A stretch of DNA of 64,000 bases, taken from positions 306,385,373 to 306,449,372 of the forward strand of contig NC_058134.1 in assembly GCF_016433145.1 (NCBI RefSeq), given 5' to 3'. The notes under the pieces are model-generated. The model did not search any database. It saw nothing but the letters and a program-made list of their open reading frames with translations, and had not been told where the DNA came from. Origin of the DNA: Gracilinanus agilis (lineage: Eukaryota). This document shows, piece by piece, positions 4,361-35,405 of the stretch. Position 1 is the stretch's first letter; every line of letters starts with the position of its first letter. A program made the position numbers and the translations under genes.

Positions 4361-7300
4361 TGTAAGAGGGGAAAATGGGAATTATCATGGTTGGACTAGA
4401 TATTTAAGGTTTGGTTGCCAGATTGATTAACTTGATTTTGAAATAAAAGAGACCCAAGTCAGGATGACTTTTATGGTGGTTTATTTACAATTAGGAAGGC
4501 TGAAGGTGGGAAATTGAGAGAGAGAAACTCCGGCCCAGACCGGAGGCCCGAACCAGGTAGGAATTCAGAGGCCCCAGCAAAGGGGACACAGAGGTTAATT
4601 AAACAAGGCTTCTAGCCACAAGGCCTCCTCTAAGAAGAGAGGTAAGAGAGGCCTCCCTGAGGCTGGAGCCTCCAGAAACACCAAGGGAAGAGAAGGAGAG
4701 TCAGCCTGACTTACTCACATGACAATTCAGAGGGAAGCTATCTAAGGTCTCACCAGAGCTCCTTCAACACCAAGTTCAAAGCTCCAACAGCCTTCCATAG
4801 GAAGTTACCATCAAATTTAAAAGAGAGCATCTTTTGTCACTTCCTGCATCCATCTCCAGTTTCACATGAACAAATGGCAGCTTCAACACTGTTTTGGACT
4901 GCCCAGGGGGCAGCCACTTGTTTTTGATTTGTCACTTACTATCATATGTAGGTCACAGACCTCCCCCTCCCCACTTAATTCCAAGTTGGATGGGTGACAT
5001 TATTCCTGGTGGCTAAAGTCTACGAATGAGGGGCTGCTGGGTAGCTCAGTGGATTGAGAGCCAGGCCTAGAGAGGGGAAGTCCTAGGTTCAAATATGGCC
5101 TCAGACACTTCCCAGCTGTGTGACCCTGGGCAAGTCACTGGACCCCCATTGTCCACCCTTACCACTCTTCCACCTAGGAGCCAATACACAGAAGTTAAGG
5201 GTAAAAAAAAAAAAAAAAAAAAAAAAGAATGAATGAGGGTGAGCTAATTCCATTTACACAATCCTCCCTGATGATCCTTGGGTGCCTAGTCATCCCAAGT
5301 GATCACTTTACATAATCATCTTGTACCCACAAGGGTCTTCTAACTACAATAGTTAGAGATAAGAGGGGAATGGAAGAGAGAGAAAGCAAAACCAATGTTT
5401 TTCTCGGGGCACTGACAAAGAAAACAATTGGGGGCAGTCCCCTTTTGGCATAAAATGTACATTTAAAGTAATTTTTCAACCTCCTTCAGTTCAATCAGTT
5501 GTAACATTCTGGATCCATTCTGGATCTCTTGATGCAGCGTAGATTCTTCAGGCATCTTTCTGCAAACAGTTCATTCTCTGGATTAAGAAGTTAGCAAGCT
5601 TTTTCCCCTGTAAATTTTTTTCTCAAACAAAAATTTAAATCTTGGATTTTATAAAAAACACAATCCCCCCTGAATAGGGTGTTTAAAAAAGAAACACCCA
5701 GATCAGCTCAGGATACATGGTTGAGTTATGGGGGTGTATGAGTCAATTCAAAAGAAAAAACAAAAAACATAAAAGAAAAACAAATAGAAGAAAAAATTAA
5801 ACTTTGGGAGAAAGAAAAAAATCAAAATCAGAATCAACATATCAAAATCTATGTATGTAAAAATTTCTGAATAAACAAAAATAAATTCATAACAGGCCCT
5901 TGTATTAGGGTCCAATTAAGGGAATTTCTATCCCACTAGTCTGTAGGACAAAATGAAGTAATATTGCACTTACCCATTGGCAGCCAAGACTACAGGAAGT
6001 TGCCATTCTATAAAAGAGAAAAGAGGACCAGATTTATGTGCAAAGGAAGTGTCATTCCCTGGTCTGATTTACCTTCACTCTCCCGGATAGGGTGAGCCAG
6101 GATGATGGCCAACCTTCGATACTCGACTGGTAGTGTAGTAGGAAGTGTCCTACGTCTTAACATATGTTAAGCATCGCAACTTTGAGTCTTACACTAAATT
6201 CAAGTCCTTAGTACTGGCATGGAAGTTCCTCATTCCCACCTGTATTTGTATGGTCTTTTTGACCTTGTGCTCCTTGGCACTGTGCAGTTTCTCATCAATC
6301 CCATTGGGATTGGTTGGTCAGTCTCCATAACCTTGTGCCTTCTTAGCACTGTTTAGTGGCTCTTGTGTTCCCTTCTCCTGGAATCAGACAGAAACATTAA
6401 TCACAGTCCCATAATATTTACAAATACTTGGCAGGTTCCCAAAGTCTACCTTGTGAGTAAGCATTAATATTATAGCAAATATATAAACAATGAACTTATA
6501 TCACTGCAAAAATAAAAAGATTAATAGTGATTATATGTACTTTAAGTATAAGAAATGAGAAAAAGGGAAAAGAGTAAATTATTCTATTACAAAATAAAAG
6601 GAAAAGCAATAAGAAAATTAAAAATAAATTCAGGGAAAAAATACAATGTGATTCCAAAAACAGCATCCATTGTCTATGAACTGTTATCTCCAATGCATGT
6701 GACAAGAAACAGCCAACCAGTTTCAATAGAAGATGCTGTCTTTACATGTGAGTAATGAATCCAAAAGTCCTTTTCTCCCATTTTTTATAGCTATTGGAGT
6801 GGTTAATAATATTTGGAATGGCCCTTCCCATGAAGGCTGAGTTGCTCCAGTGCACTGGAAATTCTTTATATACACCTTGTCACCTGGGTTCAAGTCATGA
6901 AGTGAAAAGTCTATTGGTCCTGCTTGTACTGCAGTTCCGGATGCATGGATTTCAAGCAGTGTGTGCTGCAATTCCTGTATATAGGAAGCAATAGAAGTAT
7001 CTCCTCCTAATAGTGATGTATATGCAGGAGAAAAAGGCTTAGCCTGTATAGGGGGATGTCCAAAAAGCATCTCATATGATGAGATATGTAGATCTCCCCT
7101 GGGCCTGCTTCGAATCTAAGGTAAAATAGAGCCAAAGGGAAAATTTCAGGCCATTCTAAATGTGTCTCAGTGCATAATTTGCCAATCATAGTTTTAAATT
7201 CTCTGTTTCAACTCATCCTTTCTCATCCTTTCAACTTGGCCTGAGCTCTGGGGGTGATATGGTACATGGAATTTAGGGGTTGCTCCCAAACAGGAATATA

Positions 7301-7778
7301 TTTCAGATAAAACTGAATCAGTAAAACAACTTCCCCTGTCCGAATCAATACGTGCAGACAGGCCAAAACGAGGAATGATTTCTTTTAAAAGCACCTTGGC
7401 AACAAAAACCAATGTGGCTCGGGCAGTAGGAAATGCTTCTGGCCACCTGGTCAGTTGATCCACTATGACTAGACAGAATTTATATTGTCCAGCCTTTGGT
7501 ATTGTTATGAAATCAATTTGCAGGTGCTCAAAATGTGTGTAAGCCAGGGGACACCCACCAAAAGCCTTGCCTTGAAAGGCATGTTGGTTATATGCTTGGC
7601 AGGTAGGGCAAGCTGCACACACTTTAGAGGCTATAGTAGTTATGCCAAGAACTATCCATACCCTTTTAACAGAGTCCACAATGCCCTGGGTACCAAAATG
7701 ACCATTTTTATGAATTGATTGGCAAATTTTCTTCTTCAGGGGAAAATGTGTTATTAATTCTCCTTGTGGGGGGGGCAT
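4361..7778 (-). mobile_element. Truncated class I (ERV1-like) provirus: integrase remnant, internal region and 3' LTR
   Basis: ORF 7194-7778 has the integrase HHCC finger (H..GHFG...CPTCQ) and catalytic core (LQIDF, IVDQLTRWPEAFP, IDSDRG, YHPQSSGQVERM). It continues through frameshifts in 7007-7189 and 6723-7070 (WEGPFQILLTTP). A purine tract GGGAGGAT precedes an LTR spanning about 5260 to 4361 (TG...CA). Confidence 0.88.
5031..5226 (+). mobile_element. SINE1-type element with long poly(A) tail, inserted into the ERV LTR
   Basis: Same SINE head; poly(A) tail of over 20 nt; gaatgag duplicated on both flanks; LTR sequence is continuous across the insertion. Confidence 0.88.
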
Positions 7779-7779
7779 A

Positions 7780-8677
7780 TGTTTTATAATCAGAATGTCT
7801 ATATTATAATCTAGAATGTAAAATTTAATTCTTTTGAGAGTAATTTCAGGGGGGAATGTATAGTTCTCCTCAGAAGGGAATGTATGTTTTATAATCTATA
7901 ATGTAAAGTTGAAATTCTTTGAGAGTAATTTCAGGATAATAAATTTGCCATTTCCCCAGAATCCAGACAACAAACCTATTTGGAGAAGGTACCATGAAGA
8001 TGCCTGAAGATCCAAAATGAATGTTGGGGAATTGAATGCATTTGTTTTGAATGTATATTCTTATGCCAAAGGGGACTGCCCCTAATTGGCTTTTTGTGAA
8101 TGCACCTAGCAATCATAGGATCATTGTTTTTGTCCTCTTTTCTTTTTATCCTCAAATTTCTGTAATTTAAAATTTAGTTATGTTTACAAGAGCTTACGTA
8201 TGGGGAGACCAGTCTCCCTCCGCTCTTCAGGTGGGGAATGTGATATTGGAAATTTGGGAATCCTTGAACTAATTTTGAGGTCCCTGATCTAAACTTCCTG
8301 TGGACATTTAGGACTCTTTCAAAACTACATTTCCCATGATTCCTCGTGCATAATGAGGTGGACAGGAAGTGTGATAATGTAGACAGAGGTATAAAGACTC
8401 AGGACAGGACTGGTACGCTGAAGCAGCTTGATGGGCAGAGGTATGGCGCGGCTTTTGAACTAAATCTTTTTTTTTAAACCCTTAACTTCTGTGTATTGGC
8501 TCCTAGGTGGAAGAGTGGTAAGGGTGGGCAATGGGGGTCAAGTGACTTGCCCAGGGTCACACAGTGAACTAAATCTTAATAGGCACATGGCTTCATTTTT
8601 CTAAATGGCTTTCAATAAACCCTTTGAAACCATGATATTTTTAATTCTGTCCCTCTATATTAATTTTATTTGTTACA
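7780..8677 (+). mobile_element. Non-autonomous LTR element: internal 3' part, PPT and LTR (LTR ~8239-8677, interrupted by a SINE fragment)
   Basis: PPT aggtggggaa followed by TG; aataaa within the LTR; internal segment 7980-8230 closely resembles 52080-52350. Confidence 0.65.
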
Positions 8678-11379: not shown

Positions 11380-12620
11380 TTTATCGGAGGCCACTCGGCC
11401 CATCTAGGCCCCCGCTGCCCCTCTTGTCTCTTGGCAGGCTGTGTGGATGGTGGCCACTTCACGGTCCAGCTGGAGATCCGGCCCCGCCGCCCGCCGCCGC
11501 CCGCCGCCGCCCACCCGGCCGCCGCCGCCCACCCGGCCGNNNNNNNNNNNNNNNNNNNNNNNNNNNNNNNNNNNNNNNNNNNNNNNNNNNNNNNNNNNNN
11601 NNNNNNNNNNNNNNNNNNNNNNNNNNNNNNNNNNNNNNNNNNNNNNNNNNNNNNNNNNNNNNNNNNNNNNNNNNNNNNNNNNNNNNNNNNNNNNNNNNNN
11701 NNNNNNNNNNNNNNNNNNNNNNNNNNNNNNNNNNNNNNNNNNNNNNNNNNNNNNNNNNNNNNNNNNNNNNNNNNNNNNNNNNNNNNNNNNNNNNNNNNNN
11801 NNNNNNNNNNNNNNNNNNNNNNNNNNNNNNNNNNNNNNNNNNNNNAGAGGCTGAGGGCACTGCCGGCAGTCTGGAGCCCGGGAATGGGCCTCTCTGACCT
11901 CGGGAGGGGAGGGGGAACCTGTGACCCAAAGTCCAGCTCCGCCCCCAGCAAAGGAGTATTTCTGGTCTGGCCTGGTTGGGGAGCTGCCATATCCTCCTGT
12001 GAAGAAAGGAAGACAGCAGCATTCCGAGAAAGCTCTGGTATCGTCCCTCTGGCAATCTCTGCCTCTGGCTGCCCACCTCTCCCCCACTGCCCCGCTTCCC
12101 GTGGGGGCCCCTCACTGCTCTCCTGGAGCCTCCCTCGCCCGGCCTTCCTAAGGGCTGCCCCGTGCCCTCTCCTGGACCCCTCGGTCGCCCTCGTCCCTTG
12201 CCCCCCCTCACGCACCTCCTCCCCAATCTCTCCGTCCCAGTGGAATATGGGGGGACGCGAAAAGGGAGGGAGCAGGGGACTTCCAGGAGGTTCGGGCCCC
12301 AATTCAGGGCCCCTTCTCTGTCCTCCCACACCTGTTCTGGTCCCACTCTTCTCCTCCGTGCCGCCTGTGGCTCCGCCAGCTGCCTCCCTTCAGACCCTTC
12401 CTCCTCCACCATGCTCCGGGGGCTGCCATTATTTATCATCCTCCTGGGCCTTCTGGACCTGTCACTCTCTGGAGTCTGGACCAGGTCAGTCTAGTCCCGT
12501 TGGACCCCTCGGGCCTCATTCCAGAAATGCCAGGACCCGGCATACCCGGGACCCCCCTCCCCATACCTCAGTACCCAGAGCCGACGACTGGGAGGATGAG
12601 CCAGGGGCGGCAACGTGAAG
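11380..12620. promoter_or_regulatory. GC/CpG-rich island spanning an assembly gap, immediately upstream of the candidate peptide gene
   Basis: Dense CpGs and (GCC)n-like repeats at 11480-11539; 306 N at 11540-11845. Confidence 0.55.
11540..11845. other. Assembly gap (306 N)
   Basis: Run of N flanked by extreme GC content. Confidence 1.
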
Positions 12621-13402
12621 GCGAATGGGGGGCCGAGGATACCTTCAGAAGGCCTGCCAGCTCTGCTGGGAGAGGGCAGGGAAGGCACAGGCCCACGAAG
12701 ACTGGAACGGAGGCCCCAAACTCCCAGAGAGTCGAGATGAAAGGGTTCAGAGACCAGAATAAGGGCCCTTCTGTTCCTGGATCTGATCCTAGATCTGGTC
12801 CACGCTGTTCCACCTCCCAAGGACAGACCAAAAGGAAATGACTAGCTCAGGGCTGGATGGTAGGAGGGCAGAATCCATCCTACTGCGAATGGAAACAACA
12901 TAACATCCCTAGGTTTGAGGCCTCTCTCCACCTTCCCGGGGCCTGCCGAGGAGAAGGGGAAGGAGGCTCTTCCTAGAGGCTGGGACTAGAGGGAAGGACC
13001 CTGGAAGCCTACAGGCTAAAGGTCTGACCACGAGAGGCTAAGAGTGAAGTGAGAGCAGGGAGAAAGGATTCTGGGGGGCCGTGGGGCTCAGTTCGCAAGC
13101 CTGGGAGACTTGCTCTTGGAGGGCTGCCAGCAGGGAAGCGAGGGTTGGAGCCTAGGCCAAGGGGAGGAGCTGATTCTGCGAGTTAGGCCTGGCCCAAGGT
13201 GCTGATGGAATGGGCCTATGGGCCTCCTTTCCCTCCCAGCCCTCTCCCTGAGGAGGCGCCGGATGATGCTGCTTACCTTCCAGCAAATGCCCTTGAGTTG
13301 GCTGAAATGCCCCCCATCCCCATAGGAGGCCGAGAAAAACGGGCCTTAGAAAAGGGCTGCTTCCTTGAATTATGTGACCCCGAAGAACCAGTCAATATCT
13401 GA
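12411..13402 (+). CDS. Candidate unannotated secreted peptide precursor, 78 aa: MLRGLPLFIILLGLLDLSLSGVWTSPLPEEAPDDAAYLPANALELAEMPPIPIGGREKRALEKGCFLELCDPEEPVNI
   Basis: Kozak ccaccATG at 12411. Coding exon 12411-12484 ends AG|GTCAGT (phase 2). Acceptor ggcctcctttccctcccag| at 13239 opens exon 13240-13402 in the matching phase. Hydrophobic signal-peptide-like N-terminus, R-X-K-R site, two Cys spaced C-x4-C. AATAAA at 13570-13575 is followed by a GT-rich tract. Confidence 0.7.
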
Positions 13403-13569
13403 GTGGGGCCCAAATCCTGAAGCTCCTGCTCCTGGTGACTTCGGCGGCTCTAAGTCCTTTGGCTAAGGGGCCCCCAGAACCTAGCCCCGGCTCCTGAGGT
13501 CGGGTGGGGGGAGGGGGAGCTGGGCCAGGATGGGATGAGCCACTCAGGCCAGACCCAGAGCAACCCATC

Positions 13570-13575
13570 AATAAA
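13570..13575 (+). terminator. Poly(A) signal of the candidate peptide gene
   Basis: AATAAA 168 nt after the stop, followed by ttgtgtatgtgt (downstream GU-rich element). Confidence 0.65.
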
Positions 13576-14059
13576 GACTCACTTGTGTATGTGTACAAGC
13601 ATTAGCGTCTTGGGGACTCTCACCAGCTTGGGGAGGGGTTCAGGATTGAGAAGGAACTGGGGTGGGGGGCTCAGATGCCTTGGGAGGGACAGGGATTAGG
13701 ACTCTGAAGGAACAGGGGGCTTTGGGAGTCAGGTGTTTCAGGGATTAGGACTGGGAGGATGAGGCAGAGATGGAAAGGGAGGGAGGGAGAATGCGGGGTT
13801 AAGAAGGCCTTTAGAGGGGGCAGCTGGGTAGCTCAGTGGATTGAGAGTCAGGCCTAGAGCCTGGGAGGTCCTAGGCTCCAATCTGGCCTCAGATACTTCC
13901 CAGCTGTGTGACTGTGGGCGAGTCACTTAAGTTCCATTGCCTACCCTTACCACTCTTCTACCTTAGAGTCAATACACTGTATTAACTCCAAGATGGCAGG
14001 GCTCTGTAATGAGGCAGAGCTAAAGAATTTCTGATTATAATATCAAGGCTCCAGCTGTG

Positions 14060-25200: not shown

Positions 25201-28200
25201 ATGGAGGACGTCGAGAGCCGCTTCGCCCACCTCCTGCAACCCATCCGCGACCTCACCAAGAACTGGGAGGTGGATGTGGCGGCGCAGCTGGGCGAATACC
25301 TGGAGGAGGTGACGTCACGACGGGGTCGGAGAAGGAGGGGCTGGGCGGTGACGTCAGCGGAGACCAGGACTAGGCCTGGTGTTCTGGGGAGGTTCTAGCG
25401 GGGCCTTTCTGGAGGTGAAGAGCCCGGCCTTCCCGGGCTAAGAGTGCATTGATTAAGTGCACATTGGGTTCCCTTAGCTGGGGGCCGGGGTTCCTGCCCT
25501 TGGAGCCCGTGGGAGGACCCCCTGCTCGCACGCACGGAGCTTCCTGAGGTTCCACGAAGTGTTCATTACCTTGTCTATTTCGTGATGCGGACAGGGAGGT
25601 GGGCGGTGCCCGACGAGAAATTGATTGCCTTTTCCCAGTGGGGGAAGGCTTTCGGTAGAAGCCCCGGGAGGGCAGTGGGCCGGAGATGGAGCGCAGTGTT
25701 TCTAGAATAGCCTGGGGGCTCAGATCATCATGGAAGGGTACCGATGGGGAAGGAGGTTGTTAGGGGCCTGGGCTAACTAGAGCTTCAGCATTTCCTATTT
25801 GCTGGGAAATCATTTTGTTGGTTGAATGCTGGATTGGAGGGAGGGAGAGGCTTGAGGAAGGCTGCTGCTATAGTCCAGAGGTGAGGGGATGAGGGTCTGC
25901 ATCATCAGAAGGGGGAAGGGGGCCTGTGTGACGGGGAAATCTTATTGGGACCAAGTTTCAGCCTCAGTTTCCTTGTCTGTAAAATGTGGTAAAGCATCTG
26001 GTAAACCTCAAAGCTGGCCCTTCATGCCAGCACAGGTGTTGGGGGGGGGGGGCAGAAGGGCACCACTGTATCTGCCCCACCCCTGTTGACTATCTGCCTT
26101 TTACTCAGTCGTTTGAGCCCCCAATATGCTAGTGATCTCTGGGTACCCCCATAGGTGCCGTTATACAAACGGGTTCCCTGCCCTGCCCGAGACTTGTTCC
26201 TACCTAGGAGTCCTTGTGGGGCCCCCCCACCTCTGCCCAGGCCTTACAGGGTCACCTCACCAGCCTCCTTTCCAAAGAAGGGTGAGGATGGAGATGGGAA
26301 GATTGAGAGATCAGGCAGAGAACCAAAATTTAGAGAAAGTTAAAAACTGGAGTGGGGTGGGACCTTAAGAGAGTTAGCCTGAGCCCTGAGACAGGTCACT
26401 AACAGCCTCCAGGTGGACATTGACCCAGTCACAACTTTTTGGGTCTGGTTCAGCCATTCCTATTCCCAATATGCTTGAGTGACTTGGATCCATCCCTCTC
26501 CTTGGGAAAGGGCCTAAGAGGCATCCTTTAGTCAAGTCACTGAGTCATCAAACCTTTATTATATGCCAGGCAAACTGGGAAGAAAAAGAAATGGAAAAAA
26601 GCCAAAACTATCCAAGCAAGGGGCTCACATTCATTAGAATGGGGGAGGCAACATGTGAATAACTGGGTCTTGACAAGACACCTTCAGAGGAGATGAAAGG
26701 ACACCCCGTGGGGAAGGCATTGCCTGCTAGGGGAGCCAGAACTATCCTCTGCAGTGGCTTGAGCTGTCTTTTTTTAAAATCCTTCACCTTCCGTCTTAGA
26801 ATCAATACTATGTATTGGTTCTAAGGCAGATGGGTGGTAAAGTCTAGACAGTGGGAGTTAAGACTTGCCCAGAGTCACCCAGCTAAGAAGTGACTGAGGC
26901 TAGATTTGAACCCAGGACCTCCTGCCTCTAGGCCTGGTTCTCTATCCACTTAGCTATTTCACTGCCCCCTTTGAGCTGAATCTCAAAGGCAGTAGTGAGA
27001 AGGCCAGGGGCTGAGGTCCAGAGAGGTTATAGAATTAGGAAGTAGTTGAATCTGGCTTAAGCTCAGGCCATCCTATCCCTAGTTTGAGTTTTCCCAGGTT
27101 CTGGGTCTTTGATAGTGTTGGACTTGGAGGCAGGAGGACCCAAATTCAAATCCACCCTCAGACATTTATGAGTTATGAGACCCTGGGCAAGTCACTTAAC
27201 TGTTTGGTGCCTCAGTTTCCCCATATGTTAATTGAGAATAATAATAGCATCAGCATTTCAGGTTGTTTTAAGGATCAAAAGAGTTAATACATGTGAGCAT
27301 TAAAGGGCTAGATAAATGCATCACTCTCCACAGAAGGCACCTGGGAGGTAGCAAGCCAAGATTTCAGTTGACAAAAGAAAATGTTTTAAAAAGCTAGAAA
27401 CTGGGTTCAGATTTCTTGCTCTTTGGCTGGTTTCGGCTCATGGGGTTATAATACTTATGCTCTTGGGCATCTGTTTGTCAGAGGAAGTAAAAAACATTAG
27501 TACTTTAAAAGAGAAATAAAAAGCAGTTGGTTGGGGGCTCATAGGCTGACCTAGGACTAAGGAGGGCCCTATCCTTGTCTATAATTGTCAGAGGTCACTT
27601 GGGTGACCAGGACAATGGCAGAAATTGTTTCCTCAAAGAGAGGGAGGCCTGAGCCATCTGGTCCTGGCAAGGGCTCAGAGAAGGGTTGTCAGGGAGTTTC
27701 AGGCCCCTGATTTCACTCTTTGCCTGCTGGAAGCCCTCAGGGCCTCCTCAGTGCCCACCGTCTATGTGGGCATTTAAAGCCCTCCTCAGGCCAGTACTTT
27801 CTTACTGCCTTTTGAGCTTAATCCCATAAACCCTGCCCTCCAATTAAACCAGCCTGGGCAGGAAGTGGAGAAGGCAGGAAGGGGGATTTTCTTAGTGTTA
27901 GGAACAGTATGAGCAAAGGCCTACAGGTGGGATTGAACCCCGTGGGGGTAGGGATTGTTCACTTCCCTTTCTGTATCCCTTCTCACATGGCCTGAAGCTG
28001 GACCAGATCTGCATTTCTTTCGATGAAGGCAAAACCACCATGAACTTCATTGAAGCTGCACTGCTGATTCAAGGGTCGGCCTGTGTCTACAGTAAGAAGG
28101 TGAGTGCCTGGCAGCTGGTGATAGGCTCTCCCCCACTTCTCCATGCAGCAGCATGGGGGGGGGGGGTGAAACGTGGGAGGATTGATTTGTGTACACCTCG

Positions 28201-34649: not shown

Positions 34650-35405
34650 TCAGGAGCGCACACTGCGGAAGGCGGCCATGTGACCCCTCACACTGGCCAC
34701 GATCTGCTCCTCCGTCTTGCTCCGGCCATAGTAGTCTGTGAAGAGCCCATCAGGGTTGAGCAGGTAGATGATGATGGAGTGGTCCACGATGTAGTCCTGA
34801 TCCTCGTCCCGAGGCCCAGCGCTGTAGTAGACCCGGTAGGCCTGACTGGCCTGGCGCACCTGCTCGGGGGTGCCCGTGAGCCCCAGTAGCCGAGGGTGGA
34901 ACTCGCGCACGTAGCGGCCCACAGCGGCCACGTCGTCCCGTTCGGGGTCCACGGTGATGAAGAGGGGCTGCACGGAGGGCAGGCCTGGTTCGGCCTCCAG
35001 CGTGCGGACCACGGTGGCCAGCTTCTCTAGCTCCTCCGGGCACACGTCTGGGCAGTGCGTGAAGCCGAAGTACAGGAGCACCCACTGACCCACGAAGTCA
35101 GCCTTGCACCGGGGCTGGCCCATGTGGTCCACCAGCTGGAAGTCACCCTGGCCCACAGCAGCGCTGCGGAGGGCCTCTAGCCGCCGCTGCTGCCGCCGCT
35201 GCTCTTTCTCCTCACGCGCGGAGAGCCACGCTGCAGCCAAGCCGGCCCCAAAGAGCCCGGTCACCAGCAAGCGGGTGCGCAGCCCTGGGGCGCCCAGGGG
35301 ACCCCTGCTGCCAGGGCCGGCAGAGCCTGAGGAGCAGGGACGCGCAGCCCAGCGCAGGCGAGCCAGGGCGAGGCGCCAGAGGCCTGGAGCCCGGACGGGC
35401 CACAT
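34650..35405 (-). CDS. SCO2: Cytochrome c oxidase assembly copper chaperone SCO2, 251 aa, single coding exon
   Basis: Arg/Leu-rich mitochondrial-type N-terminus, TM segment [16 protein letters not shown], copper motif [34 protein letters not shown]. Acceptor just upstream (exon starts 35419) and donor GTAAG at 35795-35799 define a non-coding exon 1. Confidence 0.97.

Follow-up and report, generated by a model that had tools for sequence, protein, structure and literature searches.

Background and summary

What does the stretch of DNA just past the 3' end of LMF2 encode in the opossum Gracilinanus agilis? The window analysed here is a stretch of 64,000 nucleotides (NCBI RefSeq assembly GCF_016433145.1, contig NC_058134.1, positions 306,385,373 to 306,449,372 of the forward strand), and coordinates count from its first letter. 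A preliminary description had placed a two-exon gene there, at 12394-13590. It was thought to be an undescribed gene for a secreted hormone, a peptide of 19 amino acids (aa) released by a convertase. This raises two questions: is the gene real, and is that peptide its product?

As far as comparison between species can tell, the locus is a genuine conserved gene, predicted to encode a small secreted prepropeptide. It is probably an unannotated marsupial orthologue of ADM2 (adrenomedullin-2, or intermedin), truncated but apparently still making a secreted propeptide that is under selection. The 19-aa peptide is the part that is falling apart.

Conservation across marsupials

All of the elements in the preliminary description were found where it had put them: acceptor, ATG, first exon, donor, intron, convertase site, 19-aa tail, AATAAA and GU-rich element. 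The start codon, ccaccATG, is read from the sequence at 12411 on the + strand, as are all parts of the gene. Coding exon 1 (12411-12484) has 74 nucleotides (nt), which is 24 codons plus 2 nt, and encodes the putative signal peptide, MLRGLPLFIILLGLLDLSLSGVWT. After 12484 comes a phase-2 donor, CAG/GTCAGT, which ranks in the top 1.4% of GTs in the window. The intron of 755 nt (12485-13239) contains a branch-like ctgat at 13202-13206 and a pyrimidine tract. It ends at the acceptor tccctcccag/C, in the top ~2% of AGs, and exon 2 runs from 13240. These ranks come from crude, simple weight matrices applied to all GTs and AGs in the window.

Exon 2 starts with an acidic N-terminal propeptide, SPLPEEAPDDAAYLPANALELAEMPPIPIGG (13240-13330). 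Then follow R-E-K-R, a site of the furin or prohormone-convertase type (13331-13342), and the 19-aa C-terminal peptide, ALEKGCFLELCDPEEPVNI, with its TGA (13343-13402, TGA at 13400-13402). The computed mass of this peptide is 2119 Da, in line with the earlier figure of about 2.1 kDa. The spliced open reading frame (ORF) is 237 nt long, or 78 aa.

Seven marsupials were compared: the window species, Monodelphis, koala, tammar wallaby, Dromiciops, dunnart (Sminthopsis) and bilby (Macrotis). Echidna (locus L008), platypus (L010) and one bird (L009) are the outgroups. None of the six other marsupial annotations has a gene within 10 kb downstream of LMF2. Despite this, the candidate region can be aligned in all six.

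The ATG, the A at position -3 before it, the exact 74-nt length of exon 1 without any indel, and the AG/GT donor are present in seven out of seven species. The acceptor of exon 2, the reading frame that it opens and the AATAAA are likewise kept across the seven. Every exon 1 peptide has a hydrophobic core with a mean Kyte-Doolittle value of 2.5-2.9, and can be cut after residues 20/21 under the (-3,-1) rule. Calling this a signal peptide is a heuristic that uses only these two measures.

The level of conservation follows the proposed gene. In the australidelphians, exon 1 is 73-80% identical to the window species and free of gaps. Upstream DNA and most of the intron provide the background: 63-72% identity with many indels. 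The propeptide segment has 80-86% nucleotide identity, and its indels are all multiples of 3 except in bilby. The region that holds the rest of the 3' untranslated region (UTR) and the poly(A) signals (13467-13600, with AATAAA at 13570-13575 and GU-rich tgtgtatgtgt at 13584-13594) is 79-84% identical in australidelphians other than bilby, and 74% in bilby. Beyond 13620, just past the poly(A) site, identity drops to 41-68%.

The end of the intron stands apart. Over the final 139 nt (13101-13239), identity to Dromiciops, wallaby and koala reaches 83-87%, which matches the level of the coding exon, lies well above that of the remaining intron and exceeds what a branch point and a pyrimidine tract would need. 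An alternative start codon within it, an ATG at 13205, was considered and rejected, since that ATG is not conserved.

Where selection acts

For each segment and each reading frame, substitutions were tallied along the species tree, with a binomial P. The propeptide test covers 26-30 codons in the seven species. For the 26 codons after the splice junction, frame A, which is the frame of the candidate, has 20 nonsynonymous and 24 synonymous changes (omega 0.27, P = 1.7e-5). The expected ratio of synonymous to nonsynonymous changes is about 1:3 for this segment, and the skew away from it is found in frame A only. Read in the other two frames, the same nucleotides give an omega of 1.3 and 1.5. Pairwise ratios of nonsynonymous to synonymous substitution rates (dN/dS), at 0.24-0.26, agree with the counts on the tree.

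The signal peptide itself has an omega of 0.83, which is not significant. Values like this are, in our reading, usual for signal peptides. The propeptide up to ...LELAEMPP persists in all seven species. The conserved product, as predicted from these comparisons, is the signal peptide plus some 27-30 acidic residues, with the consensus PLPEKALDDAANYLPANALELAEMPP.

The locus is considered a genuine gene because its structure is kept in seven marsupials, because conservation ends at the poly(A) site, because selection is specific to one frame, and because exon 1 looks like a signal peptide. In this the preliminary description was right: the structure that it drew for a secreted prepropeptide is conserved in six other marsupials.

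Decay of the putative hormone part

The 19 codons after REKR tell a different story from the propeptide. No other part of the exon is as poorly conserved (63-82% identity). Across the five species that have no frameshift, the omega of these codons is 0.44 (P = 0.026).

REKR is found in four of the seven species (window species, Monodelphis, Dromiciops and Sminthopsis). It is replaced by QEKC in wallaby, by REKC in koala, and by QETR, out of frame, in bilby. The 19-aa tail also contains a ring motif, G-C-x4-C, with its cysteine codons at 13358-13360 and 13373-13375. The C-x4-C ring is intact in the window species, Monodelphis, Dromiciops and wallaby. In koala it is frameshifted, by a 2-nt insertion before the ring that amounts to a +2 frameshift. 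The first cysteine has become Arg in dunnart, and the second Tyr in bilby. The Thr that precedes the second cysteine, conserved in the calcitonin/CGRP/adrenomedullin ligands, is Leu or Ile here.

Further damage is found in bilby and dunnart. A 2-nt deletion in bilby leads to ...LELAEMPPS-stop, and this species has three small deletions in all plus a large one in the 3'UTR. Dunnart has lost the stop of frame A. In the window species, frame A ends in ...CDPEEPVNI-stop, 8 residues past the ring, and includes neither the helical mid-region nor the amidated C-terminal residue (with its Gly donor) by which the calcitonin/CGRP/adrenomedullin ligands bind the receptor ectodomain.

Could the gene still be a new one, unrelated to known families, with the one-disulfide peptide freed at REKR as its active product? 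In favour of this, the window species, Monodelphis and Dromiciops have an unbroken ORF with REKR and both cysteines, the omega of 0.44 would fit, and no protein library that was searched contains a homologue. We nevertheless find this improbable. The segment is the one that varies most, three species have lost REKR, two have lost a cysteine, koala and bilby have frameshifts, and dunnart lacks the stop. In addition, the ring, an out-of-frame ...SKSFG-stop and the locus fit ADM2. With REKR and cysteine losses, frameshifts and the lowest identity in the exon, the proposed 2.1-kDa hormone is not the conserved product. Orthologous marsupial DNA and dN/dS had been put forward as a check, and the outcome is divided: the propeptide is constrained, but the hormone part has lost its frame, its REKR and its cysteines in one species or another.

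This decay also invites the opposite thought, that the locus is a dying unitary ADM2 pseudogene or a non-coding transcript; the open frame would then be left over in DNA that changes slowly, and no protein would be selected. The hormone moiety is clearly broken in all marsupials, koala has its frameshift and bilby its several deletions, and in platypus the ATG is lost and stops are present. Six marsupial annotations have no coding gene at this place, and background identity at the locus is high, at 64-72%. Even so, this seems unlikely. In the propeptide, the substitutions depend on codon position, and they do so in frame A only. Moreover, over roughly 80 million years, our own estimate for the divergence of these marsupials, none of the seven species has lost the ATG, the ORF of the signal peptide, either splice site or the propeptide as far as ...LELAEMPP. 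A truncated ADM2 with a propeptide that is still selected remains the reading we prefer.

Ancestry of the gene

Why ADM2? The first argument is position. The human gene order is SBF1, ADM2, MIOX, LMF2, NCAPH2, SCO2, TYMP (PMC9224546). In the window it is candidate, LMF2, NCAPH2, SCO2, TYMP. The candidate lies ~4.8 kb past the LMF2 stop, and in all seven marsupials no other gene comes between it and the LMF2 3' end; the orientation is convergent. At the bird locus, MIOX comes next to LMF2 and a canonical ADM2 after that, both of them convergent with LMF2.

The second argument is the ring. The last exon of bird ADM2 ends in ...VRVGCVLGTCQVQNLSHRLWQLRGQSGRRDSSPMNPNSPHSYG-stop. This matches the human AM2 sequence, taken from PMC11616451, with its C-terminus APVDPSSPHSYG-stop; AM2 is essentially unchanged between bird and human. 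Frame A of the candidate contains ...REKRALEKGCFLELC..., a basic site followed by G-C-x4-C, and this ring aligns to that of human and bird AM2. The window has no second canonical ring motif.

The third argument is what comes after the ring, one frame over. There, the +1 frame reads ...SEWGPNPEAPAPGDFGGSKSFG-stop, in which ...PGD..S.KSFG-stop echoes the ...VDPSSPHSYG-stop of AM2. The part after the frame A stop, EWGPNPEAPAPGDFGGSKSFG and then TAA (13401-13466), looks like a remnant of the C-terminal half of AM2 that is now in the 3'UTR, and can be aligned to human APVDPSSPHSYG-stop. An FG-stop exists only here, in the +1 frame. The same tail reads APGDLGSPKSFG-stop in Dromiciops, and APGDPSSPKSFG in koala. 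If one frameshift is allowed, the opossum sequence is colinear with AM2 from ring to stop.

A composite pattern captures these last two points: a G-C-x4-C ring, then [FY]-G-stop 80-125 nt later in any frame. In 631 kb, both strands included, it is found five times, once in bird ADM2 and otherwise in this exon in four marsupials. Alignment of protein to DNA with tolerance for frameshifts ranks the exon 1st of 370 in koala, 7th of 360 in Dromiciops, 8th of 352 in dunnart and 24th of 398 in the window species. The marsupial-consensus tail scores 40, about z 2.6 on the background of the Dromiciops locus, and Dromiciops itself has the same score. Within the echidna locus, nothing matches AM2 better than the gene at the equivalent spot (rank 1 of 396, z 5.4-5.5).

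From the second cysteine to the Gly codon, the spacing is 88 nt without gaps in six marsupials; in the bird it is 99 nt. Given this ungapped spacing, the frameshift would be common to all marsupials examined, and the change of frame older than the split between didelphids and australidelphians.

Position, ring and out-of-frame C-terminus thus point to ADM2, so this is probably not a new kind of gene. The preliminary description is supported in two other points: the gene is uncalled in six marsupial annotations, and no library that was searched holds a homologue.

Might the two frames be joined after all? Recoding by frameshifting, editing or an unseen splice could link the ring to the ...PGD..SPKSFG tail and so produce a full-length AM2-like hormone with an amidated Phe. 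The tail has its Gly directly before the stop in the window species and three others, it is free of indels in six species, and the alignment with one frameshift is colinear. It shows no frame-specific constraint, however: omega is 0.63 in the +1 frame versus 0.78 and 0.92 in the others, as expected for a stretch in the 3'UTR. Koala and dunnart no longer have the stop after the Gly, bilby has a deletion of this stretch, and the Thr before the second cysteine and the AM2 helix residues are gone. Neither a slippery site nor a short intron was noticed, no search having been aimed at them. A recoded hormone is therefore highly improbable.

Descent from ADM2 also has to contend with a number of results that weigh against it. 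Searches of PDB and Pfam with both frames gave no matches, with Pfam E values up to 10 and with the window species and four other marsupials; PDB has no AM2 match for the candidate either. A word-indexed search of 5.8 billion proteins with exon 2 returned no candidate homologue. An exhaustive search of 1.84 billion representatives returned only three matches, none a true relative. Two were from one repeat protein family and one was an LRR-like repeat protein, and all were rejected because repeats inflate their scores. With both large searches empty of relatives, the product is not annotated in frame A in those collections. Plain tblastn of AM2 against all loci stays at noise level apart from koala, and local DNA alignment to bird ADM2 is not significant in the marsupials. 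The window species is only 24th in the frameshift-tolerant ranking, and the top rank of koala is not counted as ancestral signal, since it is due in part to koala-specific substitutions (SLKNVNLRIW). The composite pattern was written after the sequence had been seen. No known ADM2 pro-region looks like the propeptide.

Synteny with human and bird is good but imperfect because MIOX is absent: its motifs and the bird MIOX exons have no match in the 64-kb window, the six marsupial LMF2 loci (+10 kb), echidna or platypus. MIOX has either been lost or moved in non-eutherian mammals. ADM2 was looked for in marsupials at the LMF2 loci (+10 kb), and an intact copy elsewhere in the genome is possible.

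A few other searches can be noted. No Logan-derived ORF was matched in the large protein searches, and the ESM Atlas returned only low-scoring bacterial clusters, which were rejected. SBF1 was not seen in the window. No literature on marsupial ADM2 was found.

Proposed mechanism and meaning

How would such a gene work? It would be transcribed on the + strand, and the signal-peptide exon would be spliced onto a single terminal exon. Translation would then give a secretory precursor of 78 aa. The signal peptide is presumably cut after about residue 20-24, which would leave an acidic proprotein of ~54 aa. Purifying selection keeps the first ~30 residues of what would be this proprotein.

In opossums, Dromiciops and dunnart, convertases of the furin type could free the 19-aa C-terminal piece at REKR. 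The G-C-x4-C ring inherited from AM2 would be part of that piece. Past the ring, the frame appears to depart within a few codons from the ancestral AM2 frame and runs into a stop. The receptor-binding C-terminal half of AM2, with its aromatic residue, Gly and stop for amidation, would remain only out of frame in the 3'UTR. Since this half is out of frame, and the shift is common to all examined marsupials, canonical amidated AM2 could, we infer, not be made from this gene. What selection keeps is most likely the secreted N-terminal propeptide.

Ligands of the AM2 family bind the receptor ectodomain with their C-terminal amide region and activate the receptor with their ring. Lacking that amide region, a ring that leads into eight acidic residues would be unlikely to act on CLR/RAMP. 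A role for the propeptide as a co-peptide, in the manner of PAMP, is only an analogy.

AM2 is regarded as a conserved cardiovascular and renal peptide of vertebrates that acts on CLR/RAMP receptors. A more daring and rather doubtful idea is that marsupials lack canonical AM2, with a perhaps independent loss in monotremes, and that their ADM2 survived ~80 million years as selection moved to the acidic propeptide of ~30 aa, an undescribed secreted peptide with a target of its own. If marsupials are indeed unable to make AM2 from the orthologous gene, their CLR/RAMP signalling has to rest on AM and CGRP alone, and opossum models would be short of one ligand. It would also mean that a hormone gene was retained for its by-product peptide. 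The present work in any case adds a small conserved coding gene, which was not called protein-coding in the six other marsupial annotations that were checked.

Surroundings of the gene

Upstream of the ATG, an acceptor-like site, ...cccttcag/, is followed by a leader of 17 nt and the Kozak context (12380-12410, + strand, acceptor ending at 12393). It scores in the top ~2% of AGs. Wallaby has lost the AG at 12393; the window species, Monodelphis, Dromiciops and koala still have it.

Further upstream there is a conserved block at 11927-12042 (+ strand), which exceeds the local background with an identity of 80.5% (Sminthopsis) and 77% (Macrotis). It sits ~400 nt 5' of the ATG, just past a gap of Ns at 11540-11845. 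Tentatively, this block could represent a promoter, or else a non-coding 5' exon spliced to the acceptor at 12393.

Of the neighbours, LMF2 occupies the - strand between ~24.5 kb and a stop near 18.4 kb, and NCAPH2 begins on the + strand near 25.2 kb. A single ORF on the - strand (34650-35405) makes up SCO2; its protein is 92% identical to SCO2 of Monodelphis, which marks the genome as that of a didelphid opossum. TYMP is found near 38-39 kb. Upstream of the candidate, an AT-rich region has long stop-free pieces of 130 and 233 aa (6726-7895, - strand) that have the look of a retroelement pol/integrase.

The orthologous DNA was reached by walking from SCO2 to LMF2, and LMF2 loci were fetched with 10 kb of flank each. 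Identifiers of LMF2 proteins were obtained with a profile of an LMF2 exon aligned to an unrelated carrier protein of 420 aa. The matches were named by NCBI and confirmed by their loci. The LMF2 protein of the window species itself is not among these matches, though its SCO2 (P0004) is in the same collection. LMF2 may be unannotated in this species, or annotated with a different length.

Comparison with known systems

The closest known system is ADM2 itself, as found in human and in the bird. Like the candidate, it stands beside LMF2-NCAPH2-SCO2-TYMP and is convergent with LMF2. It also has a signal peptide and then a pro-region; its terminal exon carries a G-C-x4-C ring preceded by a basic site, and ...SP.S[FY]G-stop follows ~90-100 nt further downstream. 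Unlike ADM2, the candidate has its ring and its C-terminal motif in different frames, and its product stops 8 residues after the ring. It is without the Thr-Cys pair, the AM2 helix residues, the C-terminal amide and a Pfam match. Its pro-region is short, acidic and unrelated in sequence, and there is no MIOX between gene and LMF2.

The related ADM precursor offers another comparison. There, an N-terminal co-peptide, PAMP, adjoins the signal peptide and forms a distinct product in addition to the C-terminal hormone. In the marsupial gene, the segment next to the signal peptide might similarly be a separate product, though this is functional speculation. The two have no sequence similarity: PAMP is basic and amidated, but the candidate propeptide, with a pI of about 4, is acidic and lacks an amidation signal.

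Finally, monotremes have a gene downstream of LMF2 in the same position and orientation, which appears to be derived from AM2 and is likewise not canonical. The platypus counterpart (L010, ~27300-28177, - strand) has lost its ATG and has in-frame stops, and no gene is called there. The echidna gene (L008, 26054-26344, - strand) is annotated, with 254 aa and no Pfam match, and ends in ...NVAQMLTNLFHEPDREGSPPEDTNDPRSYG-stop. Echidna and marsupials differ in what they have retained. The echidna gene keeps an in-frame C-terminus, ...DPRSYG-stop, and lacks the cysteines of the ring, whereas the marsupials kept the ring and lost the C-terminus. AM2 may thus be non-canonical in monotremes too.

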